Source: Lepidodermella squamata (taxonomy: Eukaryota > Animalia > Gastrotricha). From it: 64,000 nt of DNA. This document shows, one piece after another, positions 1 through 48,600 of the stretch. Position numbers and translations under genes: made by a program. The first letter of the stretch is position 1; each line of letters starts with the position of its first letter. The notes under the pieces were generated by a model. The model made no database searches and was not told where the DNA came from. It was given only the letters and a program-made list of their open reading frames with translations. Where the stretch lies: the NCBI GenBank assembly GCA_047495785.1, contig JBLDXI010000016.1, forward strand, positions 62,001-126,000, in the 5' to 3' direction.

Positions 1-560
1 CTTCCTCAAAACCCGAAAGGGTACAGACGTTTAGTCGCGGGGAAGAGAAACAAATAAATCATTTTCATTTTCATGGCGGAATTAGTTATCTGCGGTAGAA
101 AAAATATTTGACGGCAGTTTTAGGAGTTTTCGAAGGCCCTGATCACGATTTTGAAATCCGTTTGTCTTTATCTATCACCGTTAAGGCTATAAAAAACTGG
201 CCGAAATCGTCCTATCCGCCCAGCTGATTTCAGGCGATTTTTCGAGCACCCTAATTTCTGTTTTACGTTCAGGTGCCTTCAGTTTTTGAATTTTCGATTC
301 TAAATTACTCCCATGAATGTCCCTAAGATTCTCCCTCACTTAAATCGCCGAAAAAATTCAGTTTGAAAGAGTTTCATGGGCTCAGCATTCAGATCTGAAT
401 TCAGCTTTTCCAGTTTTTGCTCGCGAAAGTTTTTGCAGAACAAAAATCACGCACTCCGCCGGTATAAGTCCTGGCGGATAGGACGAATTCGGCCGGTTTG
501 ATTGAAGTTCAAAAGCGTCGACAAATTTTACACAGAGGTAAATGAGACTATGGCGGACAC

Positions 561-1984
561 CAGGGCTGCAAAATCTGTTTTCCTGCCCACGAGCATGATT
601 TTTAGCGGTCCACCTGCCCACACGACCCTACTTTTTTCACCATTCTGTTTTTCACTAGGAGCTGTCAGTTTGTGGACGAATAGGTCCTTCATCCGGCAAT
701 TATTGATTTAGAGCCACAAAACTTAGTGACATGTTAAGGGGTCCAATTCGCGAGCGGGCAATACTGCCGCGCAGCGAAATTTTTGTGGGATATTTGGAAA
801 ACATTTTGTGAAAATGAGAGTTATTCGGGTAGGGAAAATAAGCCTAAAACTGCTTTGAATGATACTAAATTTGTTAGAGAATGCGACATTTCTCTCATGA
901 ATTTCCATCTATTGATGAGGGGGAATTTGAAATTTGTACAATTATTTTGTTTTTTTCGAAAAATCAAGTTTTCAACGGTGAGGAATTTCAAAAAAGAAAT
1001 TAGATTTTCGGATTCAGCGCAAAAAGTTGGGCTAGTGCGCAAATATGCGCGTGATTATCGTTAAAATTGGGAGAGAATGGAATAAACCGCGCTCACTAGC
1101 AAATGCGTGGACGTTTTGTTTCTGCCCGCAAAATGCGCGCAGCCGAGAGCGCGCTCGCGCACACTCACACGCACACACACGCGCGCTCCGATACGATTAA
1201 ACTTTTTCGAGTCAAATCTTCCTCAATTTTGACAACAGCCATGCGCAAACTTGCATCCTAGCCTAACTTTTTGCGCTGAATCCGAATATCTATTTTGTTT
1301 TTTGAAATTCATCACCGTTGAAAACTTGGGTGTTACGTGTTACTCATAATTACGCTGAATGAGAATTTTTAATTCAAATAATTGAATAACTAATGTTGAA
1401 TAAAACAATGTGAGCATCATCAGTTAGTGGGCAGCGCTGAAAATAGTTTGATGGTGCGCGGGAAGTTTCGCTTGTTACACAGTACTGCTTTGAAACGAGC
1501 AAAGTTTGTAGTTAATTGATTTATTAAAATTTTTATAGAAATTTGTTCGTATAGGCAATATAGAAATATCTTCCCACTCAATTCGCCTTTGACCAGGCGA
1601 TCTATAAATAAGTTTTCAAGCTGAGTACAGCTATCTGGTCGAAATTCGATGCGGGCAGGGCTGCCCACGATCTTATGCCCACGACTGCCACGAATTATGA
1701 AGATTTTCCCTTGGTTTGCCCACGAAGACCTATGGAATTCGCTCTAGGCAAAGCCGATGAATTACTCGGCGTAAACAAAGCTAACTGTAACAAGAAAGAC
1801 ACTAGTTGTATGTAAAATTTCCGAGCTTTTGAATCAGCGGAAGGTAAAAAGCGGAAACCTGCCAACATCGTGGTGAGGCACGAAAATGCATGCCTTTTCC
1901 GGACCTGCCCACGAAATCAGGGTTCAGCCCCCTCGACCTGCCCAGGAGCATTACTCGCTTGCTCGGACAGGTTTTGCAGCCCTG
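561..1984. mobile_element. Non-autonomous hAT-superfamily DNA transposon
   Basis: Left end CAGGGCTGCAAAATCTGT (561-578) matches the reverse complement of the right end ACAGGTTTTGCAGCCCTG (1967-1984) at 17/18. Perfect 8-bp TSD GCGGACAC at 553-560 and 1985-1992. Repeated subterminal (C)TGCCCACGA motifs near both ends. No transposase ORF. Confidence 0.88.
965..1328. mobile_element. Nested MITE-like element (about 70-bp inverted repeats) inside the hAT element
   Basis: 965-1035 (CAAGTTTTCAACGGTGAGGAATTTCAAAAAA...GGATTCAGCGCAAAAAGTTGGGCTAG) is the imperfect reverse complement of 1258-1328. Confidence 0.7.
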
Positions 1985-2763
1985 GCGGACACGTTGGTAT
2001 TTTTTGTTTGATCAAAAAATGATTAGAAACCTATGAAATTTCAAGTTGAAAAAAGCGAAATTTCCATCTCAGGTTGACTATTTTCAAATTGCTGGTATGT
2101 CCTGACCATGCAAGATAACGGTGTCCTGGTCTCAAACCCTTGTAGGCAACATCGAAGAGCAAACTTCCTCAAAAGGGCGATCACGAATTCATCAAATTCA
2201 ATTTTCTGCGATTTTTCAAAGTCGAAATTCCGAAATCGTCCTTCCCGCCGTGAAAGTGTTAAGTCATAAGGGCTTTATAGGTAGTTATTTCTGTCAGGGA
2301 GCGAGTCCCTAGGGTTTCCATGTGTGTGGGATCGCTCGCCGATTTTAAGGAAGCGGCTTTTTATCTTATGTGAAGTTTCCACATTTTTTAAACTTACCTA
2401 ACTAGGCCTGCAGAAAAATTTGTCGACTTTTTTCAGCAAATTTATCACTCCCTAACTCTAACCATTCACCGTCATCCAGCTGGGTTATCTTACAATCTTT
2501 CAAGAGAACATTCCCTGCTACTATAATACCGGGCTATATTTGTATGGTATGACATGAGTACGGAGCCGAACGATAATTACGAGTCGGAACGCACCGGAGG
2601 CGAGTTGCGATGAGTAAATCGAATTCGGCGAGTTCAGATTTCAGATATGAACAATTTACGAATGTTATACAGTAAAACCTGCTATTTCGAACTCTGGTAA
2701 GGTCGAAAATCTGTCATGTCGAACACTTTTGTAGAACCGTCTATAGTTCACATAATCTAAATT

Positions 2764-2824
<61 letters not shown>
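2764..2824. repeat. Compound (TC)n(AT)n microsatellite
   Basis: Directly visible dinucleotide run. Confidence 0.95.
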
Positions 2825-2827
<3 letters not shown>

Positions 2828-2913
2828 CTCAAATATAAAAACTTCACTTACATTATTTAATAAGTAAAATTTTTAATTTTCAACTGCATTCTTCTCAAAT
2901 TATCTTCAAATAG

Positions 2914-5814
2914 TAAGATCCAGAGGTTCAAAAAATTCGATGAGTTCACCAAAAATGAACGATTGGGCAGCGGCGCTTTCGGATCGGTTTGGCACTGCAG
3001 AGCTAAGAAAGATTACGCTGACTATGCTGTCAAAGTGGTAAATCTTAGCGCGATTCAACGGAACTATGAAAAGAATCAGGATATGGCTGGGATACTAGTC
3101 GAATTAACCCGTAATGAGGTTCACCATTCACATTATAACATGAAAACAACGCAAACTCTGATATCATTGATTTTCTACCAGCATGTCAAGCTTCAAAATC
3201 TAAATCACCCTAATATAGTCGCGGTGTACGGCGCGTTTGAAGGTCAGTGAGTTGAAGCCAACTCCGAGCATTAGGGAATCGCCGATTTTTATATTCAAAA
3301 TAACTCCAGAAAGTTTGTTGCAAATCGATGCTACAAACCAAGTGAAGGATAGATGGTACCTGGATGATAAAATGTACTATCTCGTCATGGAGTTTTGTCC
3401 TGGCGGAGATTTGGAAAACTACATTAAACAAACCGAACAAAACAATAGAACCATTGGAGAACTAACGCTACTGCATTGGGCTCGCCAATTAGTATCGGCC
3501 ATAAGCTGCCTGCATGATCGCGGAGCGCTTCATCGGGATATCAAGCCAAAAAACATCTTGCTATGTGACGATGGGAGGACTGTCAAGTTGGGTGATTTCG
3601 GATTAACAAAAATCTATGATGGGTGAAACTTCTCACATTGCGCCAGCAATGACTGCTTAAACTTTTCGTTTTCAGGACTTCCAACAGTACAACATTAGGA
3701 CTCGGAACGCCGAATTATGCCGCGCCTGAGATTTTTAACAGAGAGCAACATTCAAAAGTCAGTGATTGGTGGTCTCTTGGTGTAACGCTGTTCGAATTAG
3801 CTCATCTTCGCCGACCTGTAAGCTACTTTTTTTTCTGGGATGGTTCTTGATTATGATTCTTATAGTTCGAAACAACTGCCGATATTATCAAGTAAGTTTC
3901 AAGACATCACGCTCCTTCGGTATTTTCCACCGACTGCTGCGAATCGGAGAAAGGTTCAACTCGTCGTATATATATTTTATCTCTCTCGATTCCAGGGACT
4001 CGATACAACCGAATTTCGACAATATCCGATGCTCACAGGAGTTTCAGTACTTCGTGTCATCTATGCTACAAAAAGAGCCATCGAAAAGAGCCAAGGTTGA
4101 AGACTTACTGGCGAGCTCTTTCTTGACGCAAAACCATCATACCACTAAAAGAAATGTATCCCAAACAACGGCTGACAATACTGCAGTCAATTCTGAAGCA
4201 GCTTTGAAGGCAAGCCGATTTAATCTGTAGTATCATTCTGAAATATTCATTATGTATTGTCCCTCACAGATGTTGTTTAAATATTCGAGGCAAGGTAACA
4301 TGCTCCCGGAGATTGAGAAATTGCTGAACGACAGCCGATTGAATTTGAACGTGAATAGTAGGAACGACGACGGGTTCACGCCATTGATGATTGCAGCGCA
4401 AGAGGGATTCGATGAATTTATGAAACCGTTAGTACAAAAGTATGGGGCAAACGTTGAATCAGTAGACGTTCAAGGCAGAACAGCAGTGTACTTGGCCGCT
4501 AAAAACGGACACTTCAAAGTTGTGCAAGTCCTCGCCAAAGATTTGAAGGCGAATGTCGAAACAGCTGAGAACGGCGGCGCGATGTCTTTATACGTCGCTG
4601 CTCAGAATGGTCACCTGGAAATCGTGAAGCTTCTCGCTGGAGACGTCAACGCCGATGTGAATGCGGCGACGGATACTGGTGCTACGCCGTTGTACATCGC
4701 TGCTCAAAATGGTCACTTGGAAATCGTGAAGCTTCTCGCTGGAGACTTCAACGCCGATGTGAATGCGGCGATGAATGATGGTGCTACGCCGTTGTTCATC
4801 GCTGCTCAGGAGGGTCACTTGGAAATCGTGAAGCTTCTCGCTGGAGACTTCAACGCCGATGTGAATGCGGCGAGGAATGATGGTGCTACGCCGTTGTTCA
4901 TCGCTGCTCAGGAGGGTCACTTGGAAATCGTGAAGCTTCTCGCTGGAGACTTCAACGCCGATGTGAATGCGGCGAGGAATACTGGTGCTACGCCGTTGTT
5001 CATCGCTGCTCAGGAGGGTCACTTGGAAATCGAGAAGCTTCTCGCTGGAGACTTCAACGCCGATGTGAATGCGGCGAGGAATACTGGTGCTACGCCGTTG
5101 TTCATCGCTGCTCAGGAGGGTCACTTGGAAATCGTGAAGCTTCTCGCTGGAGAATTCAGCGCCGATGTGAATGCGGCGAGGAATGATGGTGTTACGCCGT
5201 TATACATCGCTGCTCTGAATGGTCACTTGGAAATCGTGAAGCTTCTCGCTGGAGAATTCAACGCCGATGTGAATGCAGCGGTGAATGATGGTGCTACTCC
5301 GTTGTTCATCGCTGCTCTGAATGGTCACTTGGAAATCGTGAAGCTTCTCGCTGGAGAATTCAATGCCGATGTGAATGCAGCGGTGAATGATGGTGCTACG
5401 CCGTTGTACATCGCTGCTCAAAATGGTCACTTGGAAATCGTGAAGCTTCTCGCTGGAGACTTCAACGGCGATGTGAATGCGGCGAGGAATGATGGTGTTA
5501 TGCCGTTGTACATCGCTGCTCAAAATGGTCACTTGGAAATCGTGAAGCTTCTCGCTGGAGACTTCAACGCCGATGTGAATGCGGCGAGGAATGATGGTTT
5601 TACGCCTTTAATGATCGCTGCGTACAACGGTCACTCCTGTGTTTTAGATTTTTTATTGCAGTCGCCTGGTATAAACGTAAACGCTCGAATGCCGTCAAAC
5701 GGATGGACGGCTCTATCTGCAGCCACGAACTGCAAGGCAGATGTAGCGCCTGATGACAAGCAGAGATGCATCGAGCTATTGCGGGCGGCTGGAGCTGTGC
5801 ATCCTGGAAGGTAG
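2914..5814 (+). CDS. Ser/Thr protein kinase (NEK-like catalytic domain) fused to a C-terminal ankyrin-repeat array; multi-exon, first exon not resolved
   Basis: Motifs [51 protein letters not shown] and [13 protein letters not shown] are spread over short exons (about 2914-3118, 3182-3242, ~3354-3622, 3677-3817, ~3994-4210). The last exon, ~4270-5814, encodes about 13-14 ankyrin repeats. Confidence 0.88.
4576..5595 (+). repeat. Ten tandem, nearly identical 102-bp (34-aa) ankyrin-coding repeats
   Basis: The unit GGTGCTACGCCGTTGTTCATCGCTGCTCAGGAGGGTCACTTGGAAATCGTGAAGCTTCTCGCTGGAGACTTCAACGCCGATGTGAATGCGGCGAGGAATGAT recurs with few substitutions. Confidence 0.95.
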
Positions 5815-6263
5815 ACGAGATATCCCAATGTCACATAATTTGTATTATAATTACGATAAGCAAGCGTCTCCAATTTTACTCGGCTGCTGTTTCGCACCTA
5901 TTGGCAAACGCAATTGCTTGTCACGCTCATCTTTTTGCGGCTGCTTTGCAAAATATTTTAGCAAATTATCTAAATCTTCAATCTTGCTGCACGTGTGCTG
6001 ACAAAAACGTATCAGTTTAGTGTTTAGATCGCGTGAGCGCGTGTGACCTTTGACCTGCAAAAAGAAGTATAATGTTAATACCCCCTAGTTAGAGGGTCCT
6101 ACTTCGCGCACTGCTGAGTAGTTATTAGCCCCAATTATATTATAGTAAATAATATAATTTAATATAATTTATAATATAATATAAATATAAATAAAAGCGA
6201 TAGTGCAACTCTTGGACTTGTTACGTTTGATACCTTATTGTGGCGCTACATACATTACGTCTT

Positions 6264-6593
6264 CTAGCGTACGTGGTCAAAGCCGGGAACTTTTTCTGGG
6301 GATTTTCCTGGTCGTCCAAGGTGTCTAAGGTACTTTTTCATGAAATTGTCACAGCTACCTAGCGTCTTGAATTTTCGATTTTCCTGATGATAAGTGACAT
6401 TTATCACTCTTTCACGGTAACGGTGAGTTTCGAGCTGTGCCTTGGTAACACCCACCCAATGTCGGGTCCAAGAAGCGTCCCCGGATCCGACCCGGGTAAA
6501 ACCCGAATCGAGGTCAACTTTGTTCATCACGCCATACAAGAACTCACGCAGCTTAGTTTCCAAAGAATCGTATGAAATAAAAAGTTTGGCCAT
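6264..6593 (-). CDS. Possible small hypothetical protein (109 aa)
   Basis: ATG-started ORF with coding-like composition lying between two genes; no recognisable family. Confidence 0.3.
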   Translation of the reverse strand: MAKLFISYDSLETKLREFLYGVMNKVDLDSGFTRVGSGDASWTRHWVGVTKAQLETHRYRERVINVTYHQENRKFKTLGSCDNFMKKYLRHLGRPGKSPEKVPGFDHVR

Positions 6594-7221
6594 CGCGAGC
6601 CTGTTTATGAACTTCTGAAATGATTATATCCTTTTCGATATCAAACGATCGCTGAAAATGCGTGGCACATTTATTATTAAACGAGTTCTTTTTCATGACT
6701 TTAGATCCAGATTCATTGAAAATTCAGCGTTTATTCACTTCACCGCGACAAAAACTGATGAAAGTATATAAATGGAAAAAGGGATTGAAAAGAGGAATTC
6801 TAACGCTGTTATCGGACGTACAGAGCGCAAGGCCTATCATCGCAGCCTCCTCTCACGGTGATAATGCTATCGCACGAAGGAACATTGGCGCTGGTGGAAC
6901 GTAGAAACAGGTTATAATGGCCAACTTCCTGACATAAGATATAAACGACAGCAAAGGCAGATAGAGAGTGAATTCATGCTGAAATGCTATTTAGTTGCTT
7001 CAACAATACCAGCCGTAATGGTCCTATAATACATCACTTTTCGGTTGCGGAGCTAAAATAGTTTCCAAGTTTGTAAAGCTTGACAAGCTACTTTTTCGCG
7101 ATTAACAACATCAGCTATGCAGATTTCCCCCGCTTTTTTACTCGTCACTTTGACTTTACAACAATGGTATTGATAGTCAACGCGGTTATATCGAAAGAAG
7201 CCCGTGACTGTCACAACTTCA

Positions 7222-10200
7222 ATGTACCAAGCTGCACTTTTGAAATTAGTTATCGACGCGGGCATTACCAATCCCGATCATCAATCTCACCTGTGCGATG
7301 TTTTCGCTGGTAATTTGCTATTGTTATCGTCATGCCATGAGTCTTAATTTTCGCATTGGTTTTACAGCTAATGAGTTGGATGAACTCGGCATATCACTCT
7401 TAACAAAGGACGAAATCAAGGACTTATTTCCATCGAAATTGGGGCACAGAAAGGCGTGTGAGGCAGTTTCTGTCTTTGCGCAAGCTCGTAAAACAGCACC
7501 CGCCAAGCTAGTTGAATCAGCCGAAAGTCAATTGAAGGTTCAATACAATCTTTATGAACCATTCTTAAACAAAAACTCTAATTTAGCAGCAGGCCGATTC
7601 TTCAAATGATGAGTCTGCTGATGCGACCAAAAAGGCTCGTGTATTCGTCAGCTATTCTTGGAGCTTTCGTGAGGATGACGTCCGCAGGGTCGCTGATGAA
7701 TATCTCAGCAAGCAGCCGGACTTTGATGTTTTCCTTGATGTACACAAAATCTGCGGTGATCTTGATCAAGCGATGATCGAGGTAGGTTTCATGCCCCTCA
7801 GTACCTCCTCGAGATGCCTTTTCATAAAAACAGAAAGTCGACTGGGCTGATATCGTTGTTTGCTTTCTTTGTCAACCCTACCTTCGCGAAGGTTCCAATT
7901 CGGCTGAGGAGTTCGACTATGCTATTTTTAAGAAAAAGAAAGTTCTCCTCGTCAATTTGGAAGACAGCTTTGTCCAGCTTGGAGAATCTCGAAACCTGGG
8001 CAATCTGCTTCGAATTTTTTTGCGCACGGAGGCCATGCACTTCCACGACGATGCGAATGATATTTGCCAGCAAATCCGGCTGATACTGAAAATGCCAGCT
8101 CAGAAAGCCGTTGTTCTGAATCGATTTTACGCCCCGAGCATACCTATCAGCATTGCGAACTATTTCGAGCGGAATGAACTGGAAGCTAAAATGATGAAAC
8201 ATCTTATTGATATCTGCAACCAGCCAGCCAAAGGTATGTTTGCTCAACAGTTGAGACCGTCCACCGTCGGCAGGAAAATCTACAGTGGAAATCAAACGTT
8301 ACTTGAATTAGGTAACGCGCCCAAACTATTTTTAGCTCCAAGCTTGGGTTGAAATCAGCTAAAAATAAAACTTGTAACTCGGACAGACTAATACGTTTCA
8401 ATAGTTGTACAAATATGAATATTCATTAGCTGCTAATTAATATTCCGAAACCCTCGAAATTGATAATTATGTCAGAAAAATTCCGGAAAAAATATTTTAA
8501 ATTTGTCGTAATCATTTCCCAACTGCTCGAATTTTTCTGCGTTTTATTGGGCACGTTACTCGGAATGTACTAGTTTCAAGACATCTCATGAATTATATTC
8601 ATTTTCTTGAACTATTCCACTTTCACAGGAGCTATTTTTAGAGCTCGTACAAACGGCGTTCTGCACGAGATAAAGATGAACAGCCGTATTTCAACTAGTG
8701 TCGCCTCAATTCCACAGTGCGGTTATTTTCATTGTCACTTCATAAAATCTGGAATAATGGTATAATGATTCTCCATGGAAAAACCGAAAGTATGAGGAGG
8801 GGGAGTTGGAGGGTATCATGCCCCCCCCCCCTGCCAGTTCGCAAGGCCAAAGTGAAAACCCCCAAAAACCCTTTAGAACCCTTTGGACCCTTTGGGTACA
8901 ATTAGGACCGAAAATACCTCCTAGTTCGGGAATCCTACTTCGCACACTGGTTGAAATATTGCAGCGTAGACCTGTTATAGATTTAATTGGGGCAAGTATT
9001 TGAACGAATAAGAATAAGCGGATATACCTAAGCCCTAAACGCCTATAGAACCAAGATTCTTAATGGTCTTATCGTTAATATAGGTTTCGCCAGTCTGCTG
9101 GTTGTTGCTGGCGAGGGAGGTGTTGGCAAGTCCGTGTTGATCGCGAAATTACTTTGCAGCGAAAATATACCCAGAGGACTGCAATCGCCAACAGTTGTTC
9201 TATGGCTTCAGTGTTTCAAATGGCAAGGAACCACTTTTGACGACTCAGCCAAGAAAGAATTCCGCGAGAGCCTGATAGCCGTAGCAAAAAAGGCCGCAGC
9301 GGAATTCACCGGATCGGAGTTATCTCACATCAGCGAGTATTTCCGAGACAAAAAACGGCATCGGGTTCTGGTCGTTCTTGACGACATGTTCAACGTGGAA
9401 TTGCTTCGCTTCTTTGTGCAAGAGCAATCAGAAATGTCCTGCTGTGTCATCACGCGTGACCCCTATCCGATTTTAATGCAACAGCGACAGCTCATCTACA
9501 AGTTGGAGAAAATTGATAGCCTCGAAAATGAAGCCATTGAACGTTATCTGGAAAAAACATGCGGATTGGAGGAAAAATTCAAGACGAATGCCAAGGGTAA
9601 GATTGCTAACCTTGCTAAAATGTGCTGTGGTTTGCCTTTGATCATGTCTCTCGTTGCTAACCGATTTCTCTTCGGAAATTTCGATTGGGACGAGGAGTAT
9701 GAAGAGTTGCTAGCCAAAAGACCAACGACTTTGATACTGCTATAGCCGGAGGCGATCCGCGCTTCAAAGAGCAAACCGTTGATTGCCTGTTACAGTTTAC
9801 TCTGGAGCGATTGGGGGAGACATACAGGCTTTGCTTCTATGCTTTCTTACTTTTCGCTCCAAACACTCTAATTCCTGGCGAATATCTAACGATGTTGTGG
9901 CGACAGCTGGCAACCAACCTCAGGGCAAAGGATGTGTTCAATGCATTTGATCAGCGGGCTGTTATACGAACAGTTGGCGGAGAATATGAACTCTCCTCCG
10001 TCCATCAGCTGCTTTGGGAAGCTGGTTTTCGACGAGCTGCTCAAGAATTTGAGATAGCCGCCTCAAATGACGCCGATCTGTATGACAAAGTCCGATTGAG
10101 CTTTCTTCATAGAAGGAATGTTTCTAACGCCGAGATGCTGCTGTTCGAGGTTTTTAAGGGCGAAAATGGTCAAAAGCACAAATCAGTCCATCGGCAGCTG

Positions 10201-11757
10201 CTGCGTGATATCCTGGAGAGTTTGAGTTGCGATGCATTGTTGGATGTTTGCAAGTCTATGAGCGTAAGCGAGGCCAAGTCTTTTATCCATTTCCTATATG
10301 GCTTGGAGTGGGAAGATAATATCGGACCACCGGAAGACCATACTTTAATAGCCTATGGAACTCACAATTCTTATCGCCTGATCTCATGGATACTTTCAAG
10401 GCTGCTTGGGAATCAAGATCTCGGTCAAAACTACATAAAATGCATAGCAGAACACAATGATTTGGCGTTTCTGATGCAAATTTTTGACGACGATAAAATA
10501 TTGATGCTGAAAAACGAGAGGGACAAAATCGTGAACTTTTACGGGCACTTTTGGAAATGCCAAGCAAGAACGGCTTTGAATAACCACGGAAGCTGCAAAG
10601 AAACATCCGAGTTTATTAGATCTGTTTTAAAGCGTGATTTAACATCAGTGAAACGCCATTTCAACCCAGCTGAGGCAATCGTGGCTATGGAAATCGCAGC
10701 GATACAGGGTGACTTGGAGATAGTAAGATTATTGGCCGAAAAATCCCCCGGTGAGAACAACAGCAGAATCCCGCTTAGCATAGCCGCTCAAAATGGACAC
10801 TTAGATGTTGTTAAATTCCTAGCTGGGAAAGCACCGGAATTAGTTTCAATGGCTGACAAGGCCGGCACAACCCCGCTTTGGAGGGCAGCTCAAAACGGCC
10901 ACATCGAAAGTGTTCGTTTTCTAGCAGAGAAAGCACCAGCGACGGTTTCTGCGGGTGATAACAAGGGCAGAGCCGCAATCTGCATAGCCGCGAAAAATGG
11001 TCACATTGAAGTAGTTCGATTCCTGGCGAGAGAAGCACCAAACACGGCTTCGACAGTTGACAACGCCGGTAAAACGCCCCTATGGAGGGCCGCTCAGAAT
11101 GGTAACATCGAAGTTGTTCGATTCTTGGCAAAGGAAGCGCCAACCACGATGTTCACGGCTGATAGCAAGGGCAGAACCCCGATCTGCATTGCCGCTAAAA
11201 ATAGCCACATCGTAGTTGTTCGATTCCTAGCTGAGGAAGCACCTGAAACGGTTTCCACGGCTGATAAGGTCGGTAGAGCTCCGATATGGGGAGCCGCTGA
11301 AAATGGCCACATTGAAGTTGTTCGATTCCTGGGGAGAGTAGCACCAGCCATAATGTCCAAGGCTGATAATTTCGGCAGAACCCCGATTTGGGCAGCCGCT
11401 ACAAATGGCCAAATTGAAGTAGTTCGATTCCTGGGAAAAGAAGCACCAGCCACGGTTTATATGGCTGATGAAAACGGCAGAACCCCGATGTGGGAAGCCG
11501 CTGGCGATGGCCACGCCGAAGTGGTTCGATTCTTGGCAAAAGAAGCACCAGCCACGGTTTTTATCCTGGATAAGTCCGGCAGAACTGCGCTATGGGAAGC
11601 CGCCTACCTAGGCCACGTCGAAATTGTTCGATTCCTCGCAGAAGAAGCACCGTCGTTGGTTTCTGCGGGTGATAACAAGGGCACTACTCCTCTCGAGATA
11701 GCTCAGGTCTATGGCCGACACGAAGTTGTGCGATTCCTGTCAGATTTCAAGCTTTGA
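7222..11757 (+). CDS. SAM-TIR-NB-ARC-ankyrin protein (NLR/STAND-like receptor); contains an apparent frameshift at about 9703-9742
   Basis: Phase-consistent exons 7222-7309, 7368-7537, ~7587-7781, 7834-8233, 9084-11757. SAM-like segment LCDVFAANELDELGISLLTKDEIKDLFPSKLGHRK. TIR segments RVFVSYSW...DVFLDV...GDLDQAMIE / WADIVVCFLCQPYLREGSNSAEEFDYA. Walker A GEGGVGKS, Walker B VLVVLDDM, CCGLPL, winged-helix LERLGETYRLCFYAFLLF...LW, then about ten 34-aa ankyrin repeats. Confidence 0.85.
8715..8949. mobile_element. Short CAGTG...CACTG MITE-like repeat in the NLR-like gene intron; related remnants near 6081-6113, 17120-17167, 18964-19050 and 47700-48001
   Basis: Begins CAGTGCG and ends CCTAGTTCGGGAATCCTACTTCGCACACTG, with internal G/C runs. 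A similar terminal motif (CCTACTTCGCGCACTG, GGATCCTACTTAACGCACTG) recurs elsewhere in the window. Confidence 0.5.
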
Positions 11758-14351: not shown

Positions 14352-14838
14352 TTTTTGGTCGAAAATATATGAGAAATTATTTTTTTAGGGAGGCGTAAAA
14401 TCTGTCTGGTAAGATAATTCAATTGTAATCCCGCCGAACAATGGCGCATATTATTTATTGTCTGTTGTGGGTAGGGCGATTTATGACTGTGTGTATTAAA
14501 TTACTCCCTATTTGAATTATTAGGGTGTGGCTATTGATGGATAGAATTTCGACACGACTCGGGACAATAATATCGGTTCAATAATCGTCAACAAAACATA
14601 TTTTTCGCGAAGCCAGAAAAATGTAAACAAAAATGAGGAAAATTTGGTAAATTTCTTGCGTCAAAAGACTTGCTCATTGTTCAATTTTATTAAATTTCAA
14701 TTCAAGCAGGGTGTTTCATGATTTACACACAGGTTTCAAAATTCAATTATAGACTTCAGATAAATTATTAGCAATCATGGATGTAACATTGCGTTATTCA
14801 AGTTTTTTCATTTCGATTGAAGCGATTCAAATGAGAAT

Positions 14839-16553
14839 TTACTCGCGAATGGCACCCTGGTTGCCAGGCTGGGGACGAGGACCAGTTTGCGGGCGGCGGG
14901 TGGTGGTCGGGCGGGCCTGCGGACGAGGACGAGTCGTCGGCTGAGCGATGGGGCGGCGGGTAGTGCGACCTCCTTGAACAGGGGCAGTAGTTGTCTCTTC
15001 AGCCGGCGGAGCTTCTGTCGCAGCAGTAGTGGTCGGCTGGGTCGGCTGCTGGCCTCCAGGGATGAGACCGGCCGTCTGCAGCGCACCAATGTTGCCCTGA
15101 GCCAGGGCGGCGACTTCCTCGGTGGTGAGCACGGTGTTGCAGACGAGGACGTTGTCGATGTTGCCGGTGAAGGCGCCGAGGGCCTGGTCGTCGCCGACGA
15201 CGTACGGGCAGTGGGCGAGGGCGAGCGGGCCGGCGGCGGGCGCGCTGCCGACGAGGGCGCCGTTGACGAAGAGCTCGGCGAGCTGCGCGGTCGCGTTGAA
15301 CACGACGCAGACGGCCGTCCAGCCGCCGTTGGTCGACGGCGCCGGGGCGGTGAGGTTGGCGGAGGCGCCCGAGTCGGAGCGCAGGCTCGCGAACACGTTG
15401 TCGGTGGGCGTGACGCCGGCGATGAGCGTGTACAGCGTCGCCGCGGCGTTGTTGTTGTTCGACAGCACGCCGGCCGACTGCGTGCACTGGAACGGGGCGG
15501 CGACGTTGCAACTGTGAAGACAAGGCTAAGGTCATAGACATGGTAATTCATGTAATAGTCTTACCGGTATTCGAAGCACCACGAAGCACCCTCGCCTGTG
15601 CCGAGCTCGAACGTCTTGAGGCCGGGGATCTCGAGGCGGCCGGTGTTGACCTGCAGCGAGCCACCAGTGGTGCCAGTCGCCGAGGCGGTCACGTCGAGCT
15701 GGGCGTTGCCGTAGGCGAAGGTCGGGAAGCGGTTGACGGACTGGTCCTCGAGGGAGGTGTCGAAAGGCAGCCAGAGGGCGCACTGGCGGGCATTCGAGCC
15801 AGTGAGCGGCGGCTCGGGCGTCGTCAGCACGACGGAGCAGGCGCACTCGGCGAGGCTGAAGGCGGTGCCGGGCGCGCAGGGCAGCGTCGAGTCGCCGAGT
15901 TGGAACGCGTCTTCGCGGTCGGGCAGCGCCACCAGGGTGTTGCCGAAGGCGTCCGAGCACGCGCTCGCGTTCAGACTCGCTGGGGCGGCCGTGGTCTGGG
16001 GCAGGGCGAGGCAGAAGCCGGTGCAGGTCTCGTCCGGCACGCACGTGCAAGTTGCGACGTCGATGCGCTCGCCAGACGGGCAGCAGTTGACAGTCTCCTG
16101 GCCGGTGGCGCCACACGTGAAGTACTGGCGGCAGCCTTGGCCGGGCAGTTGGTAGCAGCCGGCAGCGGCGATGGTCGGGTTCGAGCACGGCGAAGGCTGG
16201 CACGGCACTGGGCCCTCGGCGCGGCACGTCAGGCGAGCTTCGTCCCAGAAGGTGCCCGGCTGGCACACCTGGAAGATGGCCGTCGCCGTCGTCTCGTTCA
16301 GGTACAGGCACTGGAAGTACGAGTGGCAGTCGAGCGGGTTCGCGAAGAAGTCCTTCTGGGCAGTTCGAGACAGGCAGTCGAAGCAGTACGTGTTCGCGTC
16401 GAACCCAGGCGCAGGCGCAGGGTTAGGGTTATTCGGCGGTGGAGCTGGTGGGCCGGCAACTGGGGCGCGGCGCGTTGTAGTGCGATCGCGGGCAAACGCC
16501 GCATCAAGACAACCGGCGATCAGGAAAGCTACTACAATTGAATATTTGAGCAT
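14839..16553 (-). CDS. Secreted chitin-binding (CBM14/peritrophin-A) + LamG/ConA-like protein, Pif/BMSP-like, copy A
   Basis: Signal peptide; FFANPLDCHSYFQC...CQPGTFWDEARLTC; further Cys-rich modules; CALWLPFD...LamG-like domain; Thr/Pro/Arg-rich tail. One intron at 15512-15564. Confidence 0.85.
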
Positions 16554-25387: not shown

Positions 25388-27108
25388 ATGAAAACCGTTT
25401 TAGTAGCTTTTCTACTTGCTGGCTGCCTCAGCGCAGCTTTCGGCCGCGATCGCACTACAACGCGTCGTGCCCCTGTCGCTGGGCCACCCGCCCCTAGCAA
25501 CCCGAACCCGCCGCCTGCGCCTGGGTTCGACGCGAACACGTACTGCTTCGACTGCCTGTCTCGAACTGCCCAGAAGGACTTCTTCGCGAACCCGCTCGAC
25601 TGCCACTCGTACTTCCAGTGCCTGTACCTGAACGAGACGACGGCGACGGCCATCTTCCAGGTGTGCCAGCCGGGCACCTTCTGGGACGAAGCTCGCCTGA
25701 CGTGCCGCGCCGAGGGCCCAGTGCCGTGCCAGCCTTCGCCGTGCTCGAACCCGACCATCGCCGCTGCCGGCTGCTACCAACTGCCCGGCCAAGGCTGCCG
25801 CCAGTACTTCACGTGTGGCGCCACCGGCCAGGAGACTGTCAACTGCTGCCCGTCTGGCGAGCGCATCGACGTCGCAACTTGCACGTGCGTGCCGGACGAG
25901 ACCTGCACCGGCTTCTGCCTCGCCCTGCCCCAGACCACGGCCGCCCCAGCGAGTCTGAACGCGAGCGCGTGCTCGGACGCCTTCGGCAACACCCTGGTGG
26001 CGCTGCCCGACCGCGAAGACGCGTTCCAACTCGGCGACTCGACGCTGCCCTGCGCGCCCGGCACCGCCTTCAGCCTCGCCGAGTGCGCCTGCTCCGTCGT
26101 GCTGACGACGCCCGAGCCGCCGCTCACTGGCTCGAATGCCCGCCAGTGCGCCCTCTGGCTGCCTTTCGACACCTCCCTCGAGGACCAGTCCGTCAACCGC
26201 TTCCCGACCTTCGCCTACGGCAACGCCCAGCTCGACGTGACCGCCTCGGCGACTGGCACCACTGGTGGCTCGCTGCAGGTCAACACCGGCCGCCTCGAGA
26301 TCCCCGGCCTCAAGACGTTCGAGCTCGGCACAGGCGAGGGTGCTTCGTGGTGCTTCGAATACCGGTAAGACTATTACATGACCGATGGACTCTACTGAGA
26401 CCTTGGTTTACTTTTCAAAGTTGCAACGTCGCCGCCCCGTTCCAGTGCACGCAGTCGGCCGGCGTGCTGTCGAACAACAACAACGCCGCGGCGACGCTGT
26501 ACACGCTCATCGCCGGCGTCACGCCCACCGACAACGTGTTCGCGAGCCTGCGCTCCGACTCGGGCGCCTCCGCCAACCTCACCGCCCCGGCGCCGTCCAC
26601 CAACGGCGGCTGGACGGCCGTCTGCGTCGTGTTCAATGCGACCGCGCAGCTCGCCGAGCTCTTCGTCAACGGCGCCCTCGTCGGCAGCGCGCCCGCCGCC
26701 GGCCCGCTCGCCCTCGCCCACTGCCCGTACGTCGTCGGCGACGACCAGGCCCTCGGCGCCTTCACCGGCAACATCGACAACGTCCTCGTCTGCAACACCG
26801 TGCTGACGACCGAGGAAGTCGCTGCCCTGGCTCAAGGCAACATTGGTGCGCTGCAGACGGCTGGTCTCATCCCTGGTGGCCAGCAGCCGCCTCAGCAGAC
26901 CACTACTGCTGCGACCGAAGCTCCGCCGGCTGAAGAGACCACCACTGCCCCTGTTCAAGGAGGTCGCACTACTCGCCGCCCCATCGCCCAGCCGACGACT
27001 CGTCCTCGTCCGCAAGCCCGCCCGACCACCACCCGCCGCCCGCAAACTGGTCCTCGTCCTCAGCCTGGCAACCAGGGCGCCTTTCGTGTATACGGCGGAT
27101 TCATTTGA
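25388..27108 (+). CDS. Pif-like CBM14 + LamG protein, copy B
   Basis: Same protein as copy A; intron at 26365-26420. Confidence 0.87.
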
Positions 27109-30240: not shown

Positions 30241-31955
30241 TTAGTCGCGAATTGCGCCCTGGTTGCCAGGCTGGGGACGAGGGCCAGTTTGCGGGCGGCG
30301 GGTGGTGGTCGGGCGGGCCTGCGGACGAGGACGAGTCGTCGGCTGAGCGATGGGACGACGAGTAGTGCGACCTCCTTGAACAGGGGCAGTGGTGGTCTCT
30401 TCAGCCGGCGGAGCTTCGGTCGCAGCAGTAGTGGTCTGCTGGGCTGGCTGCTGGCCACCAGGGATGAGACCGGCCGTTTGCAGCGCACCAATGTTGCCTT
30501 GAGCTAGAGCGGCGACTTCCTCGGTGGTGAGCACGGTGTTGCAGACGAGGACGTTGTCGATGTTGCCGGTGAAGGCGCCGAGGGCCTGGTCGTCGCCGAC
30601 GACGTACGGGCAGTGGGCGAGGGCGAGCGGGCCGGCGGCGGGCGCGCTGCCGACGAGGGCGCCGTTGACGAAGAGCTCGGCGAGCTGCGCGGTCGCATTG
30701 AACACGACGCAGACGGCCGTCCAGCCGCCGTTGGTGGACGGCGCCGGGGCGGTGAGGTTGGCGGAGGCGCCCGAGTCGGAGCGCAGGCTCGCGAACACGT
30801 TGTCGGTGGGCGTGACGCCGGCGATGAGCGTGTACAGCGTCGCCGCGGCGTTGTTGTTGTTCGACAGCACGCCGGCCGACTGCGTGCACTGGAACGGGGC
30901 GGCGACGTTGCAACTTTGAAAAGTAAACCAAGGTCTTAGTAGAGTCCATCGGTCATGTAATAGTCTTACCGGTATTCGAAGCACCACGAAGCACCCTCGC
31001 CTGTGCCGAGCTCGAACGTCTTGAGGCCGGGGATCTCGAGGCGGCCGGTGTTGACCTGCAGCGAGCCACCAGTGGTGCCAGTCGCCGAGGCGGTCACGTC
31101 GAGCTGGGCGTTGCCGTAGGCGAAGGTCGGGAAGCGGTTGACGGACTGGTCCTCGAGGGAGGTGTCGAAAGGCAGCCAGAGGGCGCACTGGCGGGCATTC
31201 GAGCCAGTGAGCGGCGGCTCGGGCGTCGTCAGCACGACGGAGCAGGCGCACTCGGCGAGGCTGAAGGCGGTGCCGGGCGCGCAGGGCAGCGTCGAGTCGC
31301 CGAGTTGGAACGCGTCTTCGCGGTCGGGCAGCGCCACCAGGGTGTTGCCGAAGGCGTCCGAGCACGCGCTCGCGTTCAGACTCGCTGGGGCGGCCGTGGT
31401 CTGGGGCAGGGCGAGGCAGAAGCCGGTGCAGGTCTCGTCCGGCACGCACGTGCAAGTTGCGACGTCGATGCGCTCGCCAGACGGGCAGCAGTTGACAGTC
31501 TCCTGGCCGGTGGCGCCACACGTGAAGTACTGGCGGCAGCCTTGGCCGGGCAGTTGGTAGCAGCCGGCAGCGGCGATGGTCGGGTTCGAGCACGGCGAAG
31601 GCTGGCACGGCACTGGGCCCTCGGCGCGGCACGTCAGGCGAGCTTCGTCCCAGAAGGTGCCCGGCTGGCACACCTGGAAGATGGCCGTCGCCGTCGTCTC
31701 GTTCAGGTACAGGCACTGGAAGTACGAGTGGCAGTCGAGCGGGTTCGCGAAGAAGTCCTTCTGGGCAGTTCGAGACAGGCAGTCGAAGCAGTACGTGTTC
31801 GCGTCGAACCCAGGCGCAGGCGGCGCAGGGTTCGGGTTCGAAGGAGGAGCGGCGGGTGGGCCGGCAACTGGGGCGCGGCGCGTTGTAGTGCGATCTCGGC
31901 CGAAAGCTGCGCTTAGGCAGCCAGCAAGTAGGAAAGCTACTAAAACACTTTTCAT
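30241..31955 (-). CDS. Pif-like CBM14 + LamG protein, copy C
   Basis: Same protein; intron at 30914-30969. Flanks are homologous, in inverted orientation, to those of copy B. Confidence 0.87.
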
Positions 31956-38888: not shown

Positions 38889-40669
38889 ATGATCCGATCA
38901 TCGATTGTAGTAGCTTTTGTGATCGCCGGTTGTCTTGATGCGGCGTTTGCCCGCGATCGCACTACAACGCGTCGCGCCCCTGTCGCTGGGCCACCCGCCC
39001 CTAGCAACCCGAACCCTCCGCCGCCTGCGCCTGGGTTCGACGCCAACACGTACTGCTTCGACTGCTTGTCTCGAACTGCCCAGAAGGACTTCTTCGCGAA
39101 CCCGCTCGACTGCCACTCGTACTTCCAGTGCCTGTACCTGAACGAGACGACGGCGACGGCCATCTTCCAGGTGTGCCAGCCGGGCACCTTCTGGGACGAA
39201 GCTCGCCTGACGTGCCGCGCCGAGGGCCCAGTGCCGTGCCAGCCTTCGCCGTGCTCGAACCCGACCATCGCCGCTGCCGGCTGCTACCAACTGCCCGGCC
39301 AAGGCTGCCGCCAGTACTTCACGTGTGGCGCCACCGGCCAGGAGACTGTCAACTGCTGCCCGTCTGGCGAGCGCATCGACGTCGCAACTTGCACGTGCGT
39401 GCCGGACGAGACCTGCACCGGCTTCTGCCTCGCCCTGCCCCAGACCACGGCCGCCCCAGCGAGTCTGAACGCGAGCGCGTGCTCGGACGCCTTCGGCAAC
39501 ACCCTGGTGGCGCTGCCCGACCGCGAAGACGCGTTCCAACTCGGCGACTCGACGCTGCCCTGCGCGCCCGGCACCGCCTTCAGCCTCGCCGAGTGCGCCT
39601 GCTCCGTCGTGCTGACGACGCCCGAGCCGCCGCTCACTGGCTCGAATGCCCGCCAGTGCGCCCTCTGGCTGCCTTTCGACACCTCCCTCGAGGACCAGTC
39701 CGTCAACCGCTTCCCGACCTTCGCCTACGGCAACGCCCAGCTCGACGTGACCGCCTCGGCGACTGGCACCACTGGTGGCTCGCTGCAGGTCAACACCGGC
39801 CGCCTCGAGATCCCCGGCCTCAAGACGTTCGAGCTCGGCACAGGCGAGGGTGCTTCGTGGTGCTTCGAATACCGGTAAGACTATTACATGACCGATGGAC
39901 TCTACTAAGACCTTGGTTTACTTTTCAAAGTTGCAACGTCGCCGCCCCGTTCCAGTGCACGCAGTCGGCCGGCGTGCTGTCGAACAACAACAACGCCGCG
40001 GCGACGCTGTACACGCTCATCGCCGGCGTCACGCCCACCGACAACGTGTTCGCGAGCCTGCGCTCCGACTCGGGCGCCTCCGCCAACCTCACCGCCCCGG
40101 CGCCGTCCACCAACGGCGGCTGGACGGCCGTCTGCGTCGTGTTCAACGCGACCGCGCAGCTCGCCGAGCTCTTCGTCAACGGCGCCCTCGTCGGCAGCGC
40201 GCCCGCCGCCGGCCCGCTCGCCCTCGCCCACTGCCCGTACGTCGTCGGCGACGACCAGGCCCTCGGCGCCTTCACCGGCAACATCGACAACGTCCTCGTC
40301 TGCAACACCGTGCTCACCAGCGAGGAAGTCGCCGCCCTGGCTCAAGGCAACATTGGTGCCCTCCAGTCTGCTGGTCTCATTCCAGGTGGCCAGCAGCCGC
40401 CTCAGCCGACAACTACCCAGGCTGCGACTGAAGCTCCGCCGGCTGAGGAGACCACCACTGCCCCTGTTCAAGGAGGTCGCACTACCCGCCGCCCCATCGC
40501 CCAACCGACTCGACGTGGCCCTATGACTCTGCCCACTCGATCTCCGCCTCAAACTGGACCCCGCACTACCACCCGCCGCCCGCAAGCCGCCAATCCCACC
40601 ACCCGCAACCCCCATGCTGGTCATGGCCCGCGTCCTCAGCCTGGCACCCAGGGTGTCGTCCGCGAGTAA
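38889..40669 (+). CDS. Pif-like CBM14 + LamG protein, copy D (longer C-terminal tail)
   Basis: Same protein; intron at 39875-39930. Confidence 0.87.
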
Positions 40670-45614: not shown

Positions 45615-48600
45615 GATACTGCCCAGCTGGGTGGGTGGAGGTGAACAAAGCCTGCTTCACCGTCAACGAAACACCACTGACCTGGGCCAATGCGAACACA
45701 GCTTGCGCAAAATTAGCCCCGGGCGCTCAATTGGCGATCCACTACAACATCGCCCCGCCTCTCCTCAATCCCGACATCCCCGTCAAATGGATGGGCTGGC
45801 GATGGAACGGAACCAATTGGTTGAGCTACGACAACTTCCTCCTGCCATACTACAACATAGGTACATACTTGTCATAAAATTGTAGTCGCAAAGTTTCGAA
45901 TTCTGTTTATCTAGCTGCTTTGGTTGGCTCAGCGGGAATGTGTGCTGTTTACGATACTTCACTGCCAGGCTATTCGACCGCTCCGTGTTCTTCAACGCTG
46001 CCAAGCTACTGCCGTTTCATTCTTCACGTTTCAGACGCGACTGGTACCGTTCACAAGGGAAACGTGCTGAATTTGCCTCTGACTCGAATGTACGGTTTCC
46101 GCGATCTGTCGTACCTTGAACCGGGCTTTCTACCCCTGAGTCCCAATTCGCTTGCCACTTTCGACGTCAGCGATATGCTGTTCAATTCGGCGAACACTAA
46201 TACTTACGGAATCTGTGCTTGGCTCAAGGGTACTAGAATACGCATCCTTAACGTCGATGGCCGCTACGACTCAAAATTTACATTTACGAATCGGGTCAGC
46301 TACACCTTCGGGTTATGGATGGCGGGAAGCGTAAGTTGCTATAAAAACTTCAACATTTTGCAGTTTTTTGCACGAGCCCCGTTAATACTTGCTGTATTTG
46401 TTCCAATAGTAGCCCATTCAATTATAATTGCCAGTCGCTAATGAGTAGCCCAGGGTTGAGCGGTCAAGTCGGTTCGAAAACATCAAAACCGAACGATTGA
46501 CTAAAAATTATTTTTCACAATTTCGAGGTTTAAATATTAGGAGCCCGGGCTGCTATAGGAACAAATAGGGCATTTCCTTTAAAGATTCCTGACTTCCTGT
46601 GAAACTTCATTGATTAATCGACATTTTAGCTTGGATAAATTTAGTTTCAGCATTGTCTCTCGTCTGTCAAGAAGAGGAAAATTATAAAAATGTGAATGTC
46701 TGTTTCAATAAAGCGACGTATCAGGTCTAAAAGGGTATAAGAAAATAAGTAAGAAATTATAATTAAACAAAAACTATTTTGTTCATAAGCGATAGGTCAG
46801 AAAAATCAAATGTTTGCCCCTCCGGCGCCTATTAGATTACCCCCTCAGGGAGATCTTGGGTCATCTTAGTGATATCTCTGAATCTCTAACTGTAACACGT
46901 GGAAGCTTCTAATGTTGATTTTCAAATTCTCCGCACTTGATTTCAGATTCGTTGATCTTTCAGAGAAATTGTCTTCAACGAGTGAATCTCAAAAGCTCTT
47001 CCTCAGTCAACTTGAGTTAGGGTGGGTTAGAGTGTCATCTTGACCTACAACCGAATTTCATTGAATGACTTAGGGCGGTCAAGATCTCTCTAAAAGATCA
47101 GTTCATTACAAATCAAGTCATTTATAAACAAGACTAATCCTAGAAGAACTTATTTCTATAGGGAAGCGCTCCGGTTTTCAACCATTACATCGACAAACTG
47201 GACAATGGGAGCGTGGCAGTAGACACGAACGGCGTCGGATTATCGTTCATCACAGAAAACAAAACATTTAATATAAACCTGCGATACTCGAATGAAACAT
47301 CACCGAGATCTGCCCTGTCAGTTCCTAACTGTTTCACTGGAGGACAAACGACGCGTTACGCCATTTACATCGATTCTACTTCGGTTGTTATGCGAAGCAG
47401 CGTGCATGGCCTTTGCTTGAACCAAAGTATTGCCGTGGATGTTGCCAAGCTAGCCCTGCGGAAGGGTATCCTTATCGGCCAGAGTGGCTTTGTCTGTAAT
47501 TTCATTATCAGCAAATCAGCGTCAGCGGTGTCTCACTTCGAGTGGGAGGCCGAACAACTGTGGAAGACATTTGCAGCTGAGCAAGCTTCCGCTGCAGCGG
47601 ACATTGGTTATGACCTTAGCACTACGGTCGCGTTTTGGCCACTCACCGAATACAGTCGGGGTAATGCCGACTTTCCATTATCTCCATTATCTAGTGGCCC
47701 GAGTACGGCGTTCGAAATTTTTTTATTTTTGCGTAAACGTAAGGGATACAAGTTTTGGGCACAAAGGCTCCCCCTCCCCTGAGAGTTGGACCGCGATCCG
47801 GACCATTTCGCGAAGTACGGGGAAGGGGGCAATGGGGGTATCGTAACCCTGGCTCTTATGGGCAAGGTGGAAAACCCTAAAAAAGGACAAAAAAGGAAAA
47901 GAGGCGGTGGGTAGAGGTGGAGGGGGTTGTAGGGTGGACCTTTGTTCATAAAGTTCTACCTCAAAAATCCCCCTAAATCGAGGATCCTACTTAACGCACT
48001 GATTCGGACCAATGACATGAGAGGAAGTTCGCTTTCGAGATAAGATTTTGGTCCAAAACTCCTAAAGTCCGTTGATGCTAACATTCCTCTCCATTTTCTA
48101 TTCCAGCTACGGCATATTACTGGGAATCAATGGAAGACCCTCTACCGCCGCCGACCCAGGCTCTTAATTTCGAGTACAATACTTTCATCGGGCAACGTGT
48201 TCTTTCGTCGAAACCAGGTGCCCAGATTGGCGTGACCATATCTGGCGCCGCTGAAAGCGCAATACTTGCCCGCGGCACGACGCCGTATCGCTACTCTTTC
48301 TTTATCACGCGAGATACTTCGGGTCCTCTGATCGAGTTTTACCAAAAAAACAACGGCTACGCATCATTCACGATTTGGCGAATTGCTTCTAATAACTCGT
48401 TTGTAATAACTGTGTTGTCACCTTATGTTGACGTTGACTATCGCATTCTCGAGTTTGACGCGTGCAAACTGCCGAACGTTTCTTCTTATTCTGGAACACG
48501 TGTAGCTTATCGAGTTATGCTGTATTACGCGTACTCACCGAGCCAATACCAGTGCTTCGTTGATGGTGTCCTTATGCAAACCATGAACTTCTCTACACTG

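Follow-up and report, generated by a model that had tools for sequence, protein, structure and literature searches.

Organization of the locus

The DNA analyzed here, a 64,000-nucleotide (nt) stretch of contig JBLDXI010000016.1 from the gastrotrich Lepidodermella squamata (positions 62,001–126,000; hereafter the window, by which all coordinates are given), carries two neighboring genes that both end in arrays of ankyrin repeats. Between positions 2900 and 11800, coding signal is confined to the + strand and falls into two units arranged in tandem, head to tail. Gene 1 (~2924–5814) fuses a complete Ser/Thr kinase to 14 ankyrin repeats. Gene 2 (7222–11757) encodes, in order, a SAM-like head whose family membership is unproven, a TIR domain, an NB-ARC domain, a winged helix/helical linker, and 11 ankyrin repeats (Table 1). 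Introns in this genome are short, and the ~1.4-kb gap between the genes is ordinary spacing for such a compact genome.

An earlier note on this locus had joined the two genes into a candidate immune module. Our analysis points elsewhere: we estimate a probability of roughly 0.7 that these are two separate tandem genes, each drawn from its own lineage-specific, fast-evolving family, and that they adjoin as neighbors in a compact genome and not as a dedicated pair. In both families the C terminus carries an array of the 34-residue ankyrin subtype. Evidence that the genes are separate includes the stop codon of gene 1 at 5812–5814, read contigs that remain collinear with the window across 5810–6132, past this stop, and a fresh ATG at 7222 that follows an in-frame stop. 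The start of the spacer is probably the 3′ untranslated region of gene 1. When the regions upstream of the two genes were compared for common motifs, just chance-level short repeats and one repeat-element end were recovered.

Gene 1 joins an active-looking kinase to ankyrin repeats

The earlier note had placed a kinase on one of the genes, and domain searches, which for both genes were made exon by exon, bear this out with Pfam Pkinase matches of up to 75.8 bits. The glycine loop and the AVK lysine, HRD, DFG, and AAPE motifs, as read from the exons, are all intact, and by these motifs the kinase looks active. Seven exons are recognizable. The introns between them are all 48–104 nt long (five GT-AG, one GC-AG), and their phases close to a single frame of 832 codons.

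Read contigs from two runs, X1 and X2, were compared with the window between 3200 and 9199; X2 behaves as a genomic run. Introns 3818–3865 and 4210–4269 appear as joints in X1 contigs, and these joints are absent from X2 contigs. The second joint, 4207>4268 (shiftable by 2), is present in two X1 contigs that are 90–95% alike and probably represent a paralogue or allele. The corresponding GC-AG intron, with donor AAG/GCAAGC, is backed by both spliced contigs. Non-canonical donors are thus in use in this genome, a point that bears on the 9713–9771 junction of gene 2. Fusion of kinase to ankyrin repeats is supported as the structure of this family by contigs that may derive from a paralogue and come from a run taken as RNA by guess; transcription of this exact copy of gene 1 is therefore unproven.

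The first recognizable kinase exon holds no in-frame ATG. Good candidate splice acceptors lie there at 2913/2914 and 2923/2924, so either a trans-spliced leader or a small exon on the 5′ side is expected to provide the start; position 2914, which the earlier note gave as the beginning of the gene, is a possible splice acceptor and not a start codon. A mini-exon at 2716–2730 containing an ATG is a speculative candidate for the start exon. Directly upstream of the first kinase exon lies a (CT)n(TA)22 microsatellite (2759–2824), which would fall inside the first intron if ATG 2716 is the start.

Among solved structures, the best kinase relatives of gene 1, as searched with one exon, were NEK1 (57.0 bits), RAD53 (56.6), and NEK7 (55.3), with no clear separation between them. 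RIPK4 was absent among the best 60 solved matches to this exon. The first 140 residues of the ankyrin array, used as a query, returned only generic ankyrin proteins at 26–48% identity, none of them with a kinase.

Gene 2 encodes a TIR-NB-ARC-ankyrin protein

The earlier note had read gene 2 as SAM-TIR plus a STAND ATPase, and the three parts fared differently. The STAND module is the firmest: Pfam NB-ARC matched 9032–9745 with 38.8 bits (cut-off 23.5), and the motifs GEGGVGKS, VLVVLDD, VITRD (carrying the sensor-I arginine), and CGLPL align with those of eight relatives. A profile of the NB-ARC family retrieved the solved structures of Apaf-1 (1.7e-9), NRC2 (1.8e-8), CED-4 (1e-5), and Roq1 (4e-4), and also ADR1, which places it nearer to Apaf-1, CED-4, and plant R proteins than to NACHT or other P-loop classes. 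With the single NB-ARC exon as query, phmmer reached no solved structure in the PDB, identity being too low. The winged-helix/linker region found relatives by tblastn (loci L001/L008 at 1e-15, L002/L004 at 1e-6), and one relative, P0004, has Dark_WHD at the place matching the winged helix of gene 2. VHQ stands where MHD is expected, a position assigned by eye. A word-index search with the linker (residues 1–290 of the last exon) gave no match within the allowed length range. The gene 2 receptor belongs to the known class of proteins resembling NLRs (nucleotide-binding receptors with leucine-rich repeats).

The TIR domain is split by a 52-nt intron. Its two exons match complementary stretches of TIR_2 (positions 1–41 and 46–112) in the correct order, and since the family is already suggested by the first exon, the match of the second lies far beyond chance for that family. 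In the relative P0005, TIR_2 is recognized above threshold (29.9 bits) directly before the homologous NB-ARC, and the second TIR exon of gene 2 aligns with this TIR in a gapless BLASTP match (E 0.004). GAG at 7906–7908 encodes a glutamate at helix C's catalytic position; this residue lies in gapless alignment with the conserved Glu of P0005, P0002, and P0008, and is conserved in four relatives. An alignment of the TIR halves with MAFFT placed a gap that displaced this glutamate; it was dropped for the gapless BLASTP register, which also matches strand D. A single-sequence fold of the second TIR exon came out all-helical with a predicted local distance difference test score (pLDDT) of 47 and was discarded as meaningless.

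The SAM assignment found no such backing. Exons 1 and 2 together encode a 70-residue helical head that is SAM-like by eye. Tested on intron-split pieces, it gave no Pfam match at E ≤ 1, and a phmmer search of the PDB with the SAM-like exon returned nothing relevant, as did one with the TIR exon. Language-model features of the SAM-like exon lie nearest to the SAM_NCD1, SAM_1/2, and SAM_TNK clusters at 0.78–0.85, below the 0.9 mark for a lead. The fold predicted for its 56-residue piece (pLDDT 77) consists of three helices, and neither Foldseek/PDB nor a wide VIA search gave it a significant match, the best structural Z (4.1) being to unrelated helical proteins. The SAM identity of this head is unproven.

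Owing to one feature, gene 2 may not be intact in the assembly. The NB-ARC frame stops at 9743–9745, and the downstream frame opens at 9703 and runs to the stop at 11755–11757. Enumeration of introns at this frame change yielded a single short, phase-consistent solution, 9713–9771, which is of the GC-AG type with a weak GC donor. Either this is an unusual GC-AG intron, or a one-base frame break has arisen by assembly error or decay.

Under the second possibility, gene 2 could be a pseudogene in decay, a product of birth-and-death turnover within its receptor family, and the locus would then have no receptor function. Beyond the shift itself and the poor donor of the only fitting intron, the distance from CGLPL to LLF.P (~77 codons unspliced, 57 spliced) compares slightly better in its unspliced form with the 70–74 codons of three relatives, and a repeat has inserted into the 772-nt intron (between 8400 and 8800, X2 contig depth rises to as much as 2721, with X1 near 0). 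Against decay, the remaining exons are open, the NB-ARC motifs and the TIR glutamate are all intact, and a GC-AG intron is in use elsewhere at the locus, in gene 1. The break also adjoins a short homopolymer run, and assemblies often err at such runs. Finally, X1 contigs cover the TIR exons of gene 2 at low depth and its introns not at all. We regard a pseudogene as doubtful, though it is an alternative that deserves real weight.

The two ankyrin arrays share a repeat length but no specific relatedness

As the earlier note stated, two adjacent genes on the same strand each end in an array of 34-residue ankyrin repeats with AAQNGH cores. Tandem Repeats Finder reported a 102-nt period in both (10.2 copies at 93% in array 1, 8 copies at 71% in array 2), in each array the motifs recur at intervals of exactly 34 residues, and each consensus unit contains IAAQNGH. 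The repeat finder nevertheless assigned the arrays to separate families. Among the ten internal repeats of array 1, identity is 84.5% for amino acids, 91% for nucleotides, and 94% for third positions at identical residues; the corresponding values for the nine internal repeats of array 2 are 57%, 69%, and 66%. Between the arrays they fall to 40%, 47%, and 38%, and at such amino acid and third-position identities there has been no recent sequence exchange. A dominant 34-residue spacing also occurred in 12 of ~60 generic ankyrin matches and in the arrays of receptor relatives. Since this spacing is not rare, the shared period reflects an ankyrin subtype and is no evidence of recent common origin or exchange. 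The expectation that related arrays would tie the genes into a module was thus disappointed.

Differences between the repeats of array 1 concentrate at unit positions 1, 3, 4, 7, 11, 12, and 33, and most of the differences fall where designed ankyrin proteins have their binding face. At these variable positions pN/pS is ~1.1, compared with 0.37 in the framework; the comparison is descriptive, the positions having been picked partly after seeing the data. In work on fungal NLRs, a class of "highly conserved repeats" has been defined by identity of ~85% or more over at least 100 residues and comprises 0.8% of metazoan repeats (PMC4986451). Array 1 lies at the border of this class and array 2, at 57% amino acid identity, outside it.

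Array 2 has a 204-nt super-period (10752–11556) in which TPLW.AAQNGH units alternate with ICIAAKNGH units. This alternation points to growth by duplication of repeat pairs.

Relatives of the receptor and their neighborhoods

A search of 1.84 billion representatives with the NB-ARC exon yielded only ten proteins at E ≤ 0.001, identity to the best being 31%. ENA metagenome contigs encode eight of these. The remaining two, P0009 and P0010, have other origins (Logan; NCBI and ENA), and the architecture of P0009 is that of a plant-type NB-ARC-LRR (leucine-rich-repeat) protein. Every ENA relative contig examined carries animal-type genes, among them 7tm_1 receptors, DNA ligase III with BRCT, Band_7, and CBM_14. 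A scan of JGI metagenomes with the NB-ARC alignment added one 1.1-kb fragment. The architectures found among the relatives, namely NB-ARC with ankyrin repeats, TIR_2 with NB-ARC followed by an ankyrin open reading frame (ORF), and a half-TIR with NB-ARC followed by an ankyrin ORF, indicate that the TIR-NB-ARC-ankyrin design is a trait of the family.

None of five distinct relative loci has a kinase-ankyrin gene beside the receptor, which counts against the immune module of the earlier note. At L001, a plain kinase lies 5.6 kb downstream of the receptor, beyond several other called ORFs. In the literature we found neither a TIR-NB-ARC-ankyrin family described in a bilaterian nor a kinase/NLR pair in animals.

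Coordinates and surroundings

Table 1. Features of the two genes and the spacer between them, in window coordinates.
Feature	Position	Strand	Description
Gene 1 exon 1 (first recognizable)	2924..3118	+	Kinase N-lobe, glycine loop GSGAFGS, AVK lysine; Pfam Pkinase 29.7 bits on 2963-3250
Gene 1 exon 2	3182..3242	+	HPNIV, kinase subdomain IV; preceded by a 63-nt GT-AG intron; placed by splice sites and phases, junction without read support
Gene 1 exon 3	3310..3622	+	Hinge, catalytic loop HRDIKPKN, DFG; Pfam Pkinase 75.8 bits
Gene 1 exon 4	3676..3817	+	Activation segment, GTPNYAAPE; 3′ junction 3817>3866 (GT..AG, 48 nt) is a joint in one X1 contig
Gene 1 exon 5	3866..3891	+	26-nt micro-exon, donor GTAAGT; X1 loose end at 3817 continues into the exon with 2/27 mismatches
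Gene 1 exon 6	3996..4209	+	End of kinase C-lobe and linker; Pfam Pkinase profile 228-262; ends at GC-AG intron 4210-4269
Gene 1 exon 7	4270..5814	+	515 codons; 33-residue lead-in, 14 ankyrin repeats of 34 residues; stop 5812-5814; Ank_2 341.6 bits
Inter-gene spacer	5815..7221	.	AT-rich microsatellite, high-copy repeat fragment 6077-6205, probable gene 1 3′ untranslated region
Gene 2 exon 1	7222..7309	+	First ATG downstream of an in-frame stop; encodes 29 residues that may form the opening helices of the SAM-like head; no family match
Gene 2 exon 2	7368..7537	+	SAM-like segment LLTKDEIKDL..KLGHRK
Gene 2 exon 3	7587..7781	+	First part of TIR, RVFVSYSW strand A to BB-loop region; TIR_2 profile 1-41, 13.4 bits
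Gene 2 exon 4	7834..8311	+	Remainder of TIR and linker to P-loop; TIR_2 profile 46-112, 13.9 bits; alternative donor 8233
Gene 2 large intron	8312..9083	+	772 nt, high-copy repeat; phase-consistent donor and acceptor
Gene 2 NB-ARC exon	9084..9742	+	P-loop GEGGVGKS, Walker B VLVVLDD, VITRD, CGLPL; Pfam NB-ARC 38.8 bits
Gene 2 frame change	9703..9795	+	Frame 2 to frame 1; open frames overlap 9703-9742
Gene 2 winged helix and linker	9796..10659	+	Motif RLCFYAFLLFAP..LTMLW; VHQ where MHD is expected; a further ~230 residues of helical linker
Gene 2 ankyrin array	10660..11757	+	11 repeats of 34 residues; stop 11755-11757; Ank_2 217.4 bits

Pieces of a high-copy repeat occur in the spacer (6077–6205) and in the large intron of gene 2 (~8400–8950), where contig depth in the genomic run is 2700–3100, compared with ~100 nearby. 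The two pieces share 37-nt ends (6077–6113 and 8913–8949) that are 84% alike.

The rest of the window encodes cys-loop channels, a class C G-protein-coupled receptor, an SBF transporter, C-type lectin/PKD proteins, and four copies of a CBM_14 gene. These copies (14808–16553, −; 25388–27108, +; 30241–31955, −; 38889–40669, +) are near-identical and encode a secreted protein in which a CBM_14 chitin-binding domain is combined with a tail rich in Pro and Thr, at a GC content of 55–63% compared with ~42%. Their strands alternate and cys-loop channel genes lie between them, an arrangement suggestive of recent segmental duplication. The + strand from 45900 to 64000 carries part of a very large gene of many exons; it encodes C-type lectin, F5/8 type C, and PKD domains, is polycystin-1/REJ-like, and continues beyond the end of the window.

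Discussion

Two tandem genes from separate families account best for this locus, and we weighed this reading against proposals that link the genes in function or in structure. In the first, the kinase-ankyrin protein would bind a foreign factor or undergo modification by it; the TIR-NB-ARC-ankyrin protein would guard this kinase or be activated by it, as in Pto/Prf and RKS1/ZAR1. The genes do share a strand with 1.4 kb between them, each has an array of 34-residue ankyrin repeats, and an ORF ending in ankyrin repeats stands upstream of one receptor relative. Speaking against such a functional pair, the arrays lack specific relatedness, the five relative loci lack a kinase-ankyrin neighbor, and the order here is tandem, not head-to-head. 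Paired plant NLR genes are typically arranged head-to-head. We consider this proposal improbable. The more specific idea of a dedicated sensor/executor pair, in which the hypervariable kinase array recognizes and the TIR-STAND protein responds, would make the locus an independently built animal counterpart of plant kinase-guarding NLRs; it seems to us somewhat more improbable still. A kinase/receptor pairing is, in short, unproven, adjacency being the one observation from which it starts. That the whole span is a single kinase-ANK-SAM-TIR-NB-ARC-ANK gene or transcript, for which same strand and close spacing speak and nothing further, is scarcely credible given that the stop of gene 1 falls where a C-terminal capping repeat naturally ends, that the 1.4-kb spacer is AT-rich and holds a repeat fragment, that contigs run collinear past the stop with no listed joint from array 1 to 7222 onward, and that gene 2 has its own ATG after an in-frame stop.

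Several observations weigh against the account of two independent families given here. The TIR_2 scores of the two gene 2 exons, 13.4 and 13.9 bits, are each below the Pfam cut-off of 28. X1 is RNA by guess alone, and its spliced contigs (90–95% alike) are perhaps paralogue-derived. The relative contigs are few and short (4–18 kb), so that missing linkage among them is weak evidence. At L006, moreover, an ankyrin-array ORF (2–988) lies ~830 nt upstream of the NB-ARC-ANK gene (1821–3851) on the same strand; the N-terminus of this ORF is lost at the contig end, and the layout is otherwise as in the window.

Taking the genes as separate, we can suggest how each product might work. Gene 1 encodes a soluble Ser/Thr kinase, and its ankyrin array would likely bind a target and bring the kinase to it. 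The product of gene 2 is a switch of the STAND class, built on the Apaf-1/plant-R pattern. If plant TIR-NLRs and Apaf-1 are a guide, a ligand on its ankyrin array would release a nucleotide-dependent lock and permit oligomerization, and the oligomer would gather TIR domains for signaling or for NAD cleavage, for which the glutamate at the catalytic position is retained.

Among known systems, gene 2 most readily invites comparison with plant TIR-NB-ARC-LRR proteins such as Roq1 and RPP1. Like them it combines a TIR carrying the catalytic-position glutamate, an NB-ARC with P-loop, Walker B, RNBS-B-like TR, and GLPL motifs, a winged helix, and a C-terminal repeat sensor, and its NB-ARC family profile reaches Roq1, NRC2, and ADR1. 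Unlike them it is an animal gene with an ankyrin instead of an LRR sensor, VHQ in place of MHD, a possible SAM-like head, and no C-JID. With Apaf-1, CED-4, and Dark it shares an animal NB-ARC, Apaf-1 being the best solved match of the family profile and Dark_WHD the match in P0004. In contrast to these proteins, it has a TIR in place of CARD and ankyrin in place of WD40 repeats, and it belongs to a lineage-specific, multi-copy family with no single conserved orthologue. SARM1 (ARM-SAM-SAM-TIR) offers a parallel in that a possible SAM-like segment immediately precedes a TIR whose catalytic-position glutamate is retained; gene 2 differs in having one short, undemonstrated SAM-like segment, no ARM, and a STAND module after the TIR.

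In animals, NLR-like proteins are usually presented as NACHT-LRR, and NB-ARC as restricted to Apaf-1. Animal nucleotide-binding oligomerization domain (NOD) proteins joined to ankyrin repeats (11 in Acropora) or to TIR (Hydra viridissima) are on record in cnidarian NACHT/NB-ARC repertoires (PMC7642931, PMC4083563), and placozoans have NB-ARC proteins without LRRs (PMC6321704). Gene 2 resembles the cnidarian proteins in these pairings. The three-part TIR-NB-ARC-ankyrin build is not described in PMC7642931 or PMC4083563, however, and among named proteins no close relative of the gene 2 family is detectable.

The earlier note had also likened the locus to effector-NOD-repeat proteins with homogenized repeats, a likeness that holds in pieces. 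Gene 2 has the TIR-NB-ARC-ankyrin build, and array 1 resembles the fungal NLRs with conserved ANK/TPR/WD repeats (PMC4986451) in its ~85% amino acid repeat identity, its 33–34-residue unit, and variation at few positions. Unlike in those fungal proteins, the homogenized array sits on a kinase gene that lacks a NOD, and the array of the STAND protein has diverged (57%). For gene 1, the nearest comparisons are RIPK4/ANKK1 of vertebrates and the Nek-ankyrin kinases known to have expanded in Giardia (PMC3218828). Shared are the order of kinase then ankyrin repeats and lineage expansion; NEK1 and NEK7 are among the nearest solved kinases, with no clear separation from RAD53. Gene 1 departs from them as an animal gene with intact kinase motifs and near-identical repeats.

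Joint action of the two genes would be important if true, and adjacency is all that lies behind the idea. A kinase bearing a near-identical ankyrin array represents a rare metazoan case of the repeat homogenization known from fungal NLRs. The retained catalytic-position glutamate of gene 2 predicts, at the level of sequence, that this animal has a TIR able to cleave NAD once a STAND module turns it on. A bilaterian family that combines TIR, NB-ARC, and ankyrin repeats amounts to the plant TIR-NLR design with another sensor, and adds one more case to the question of independent origins.

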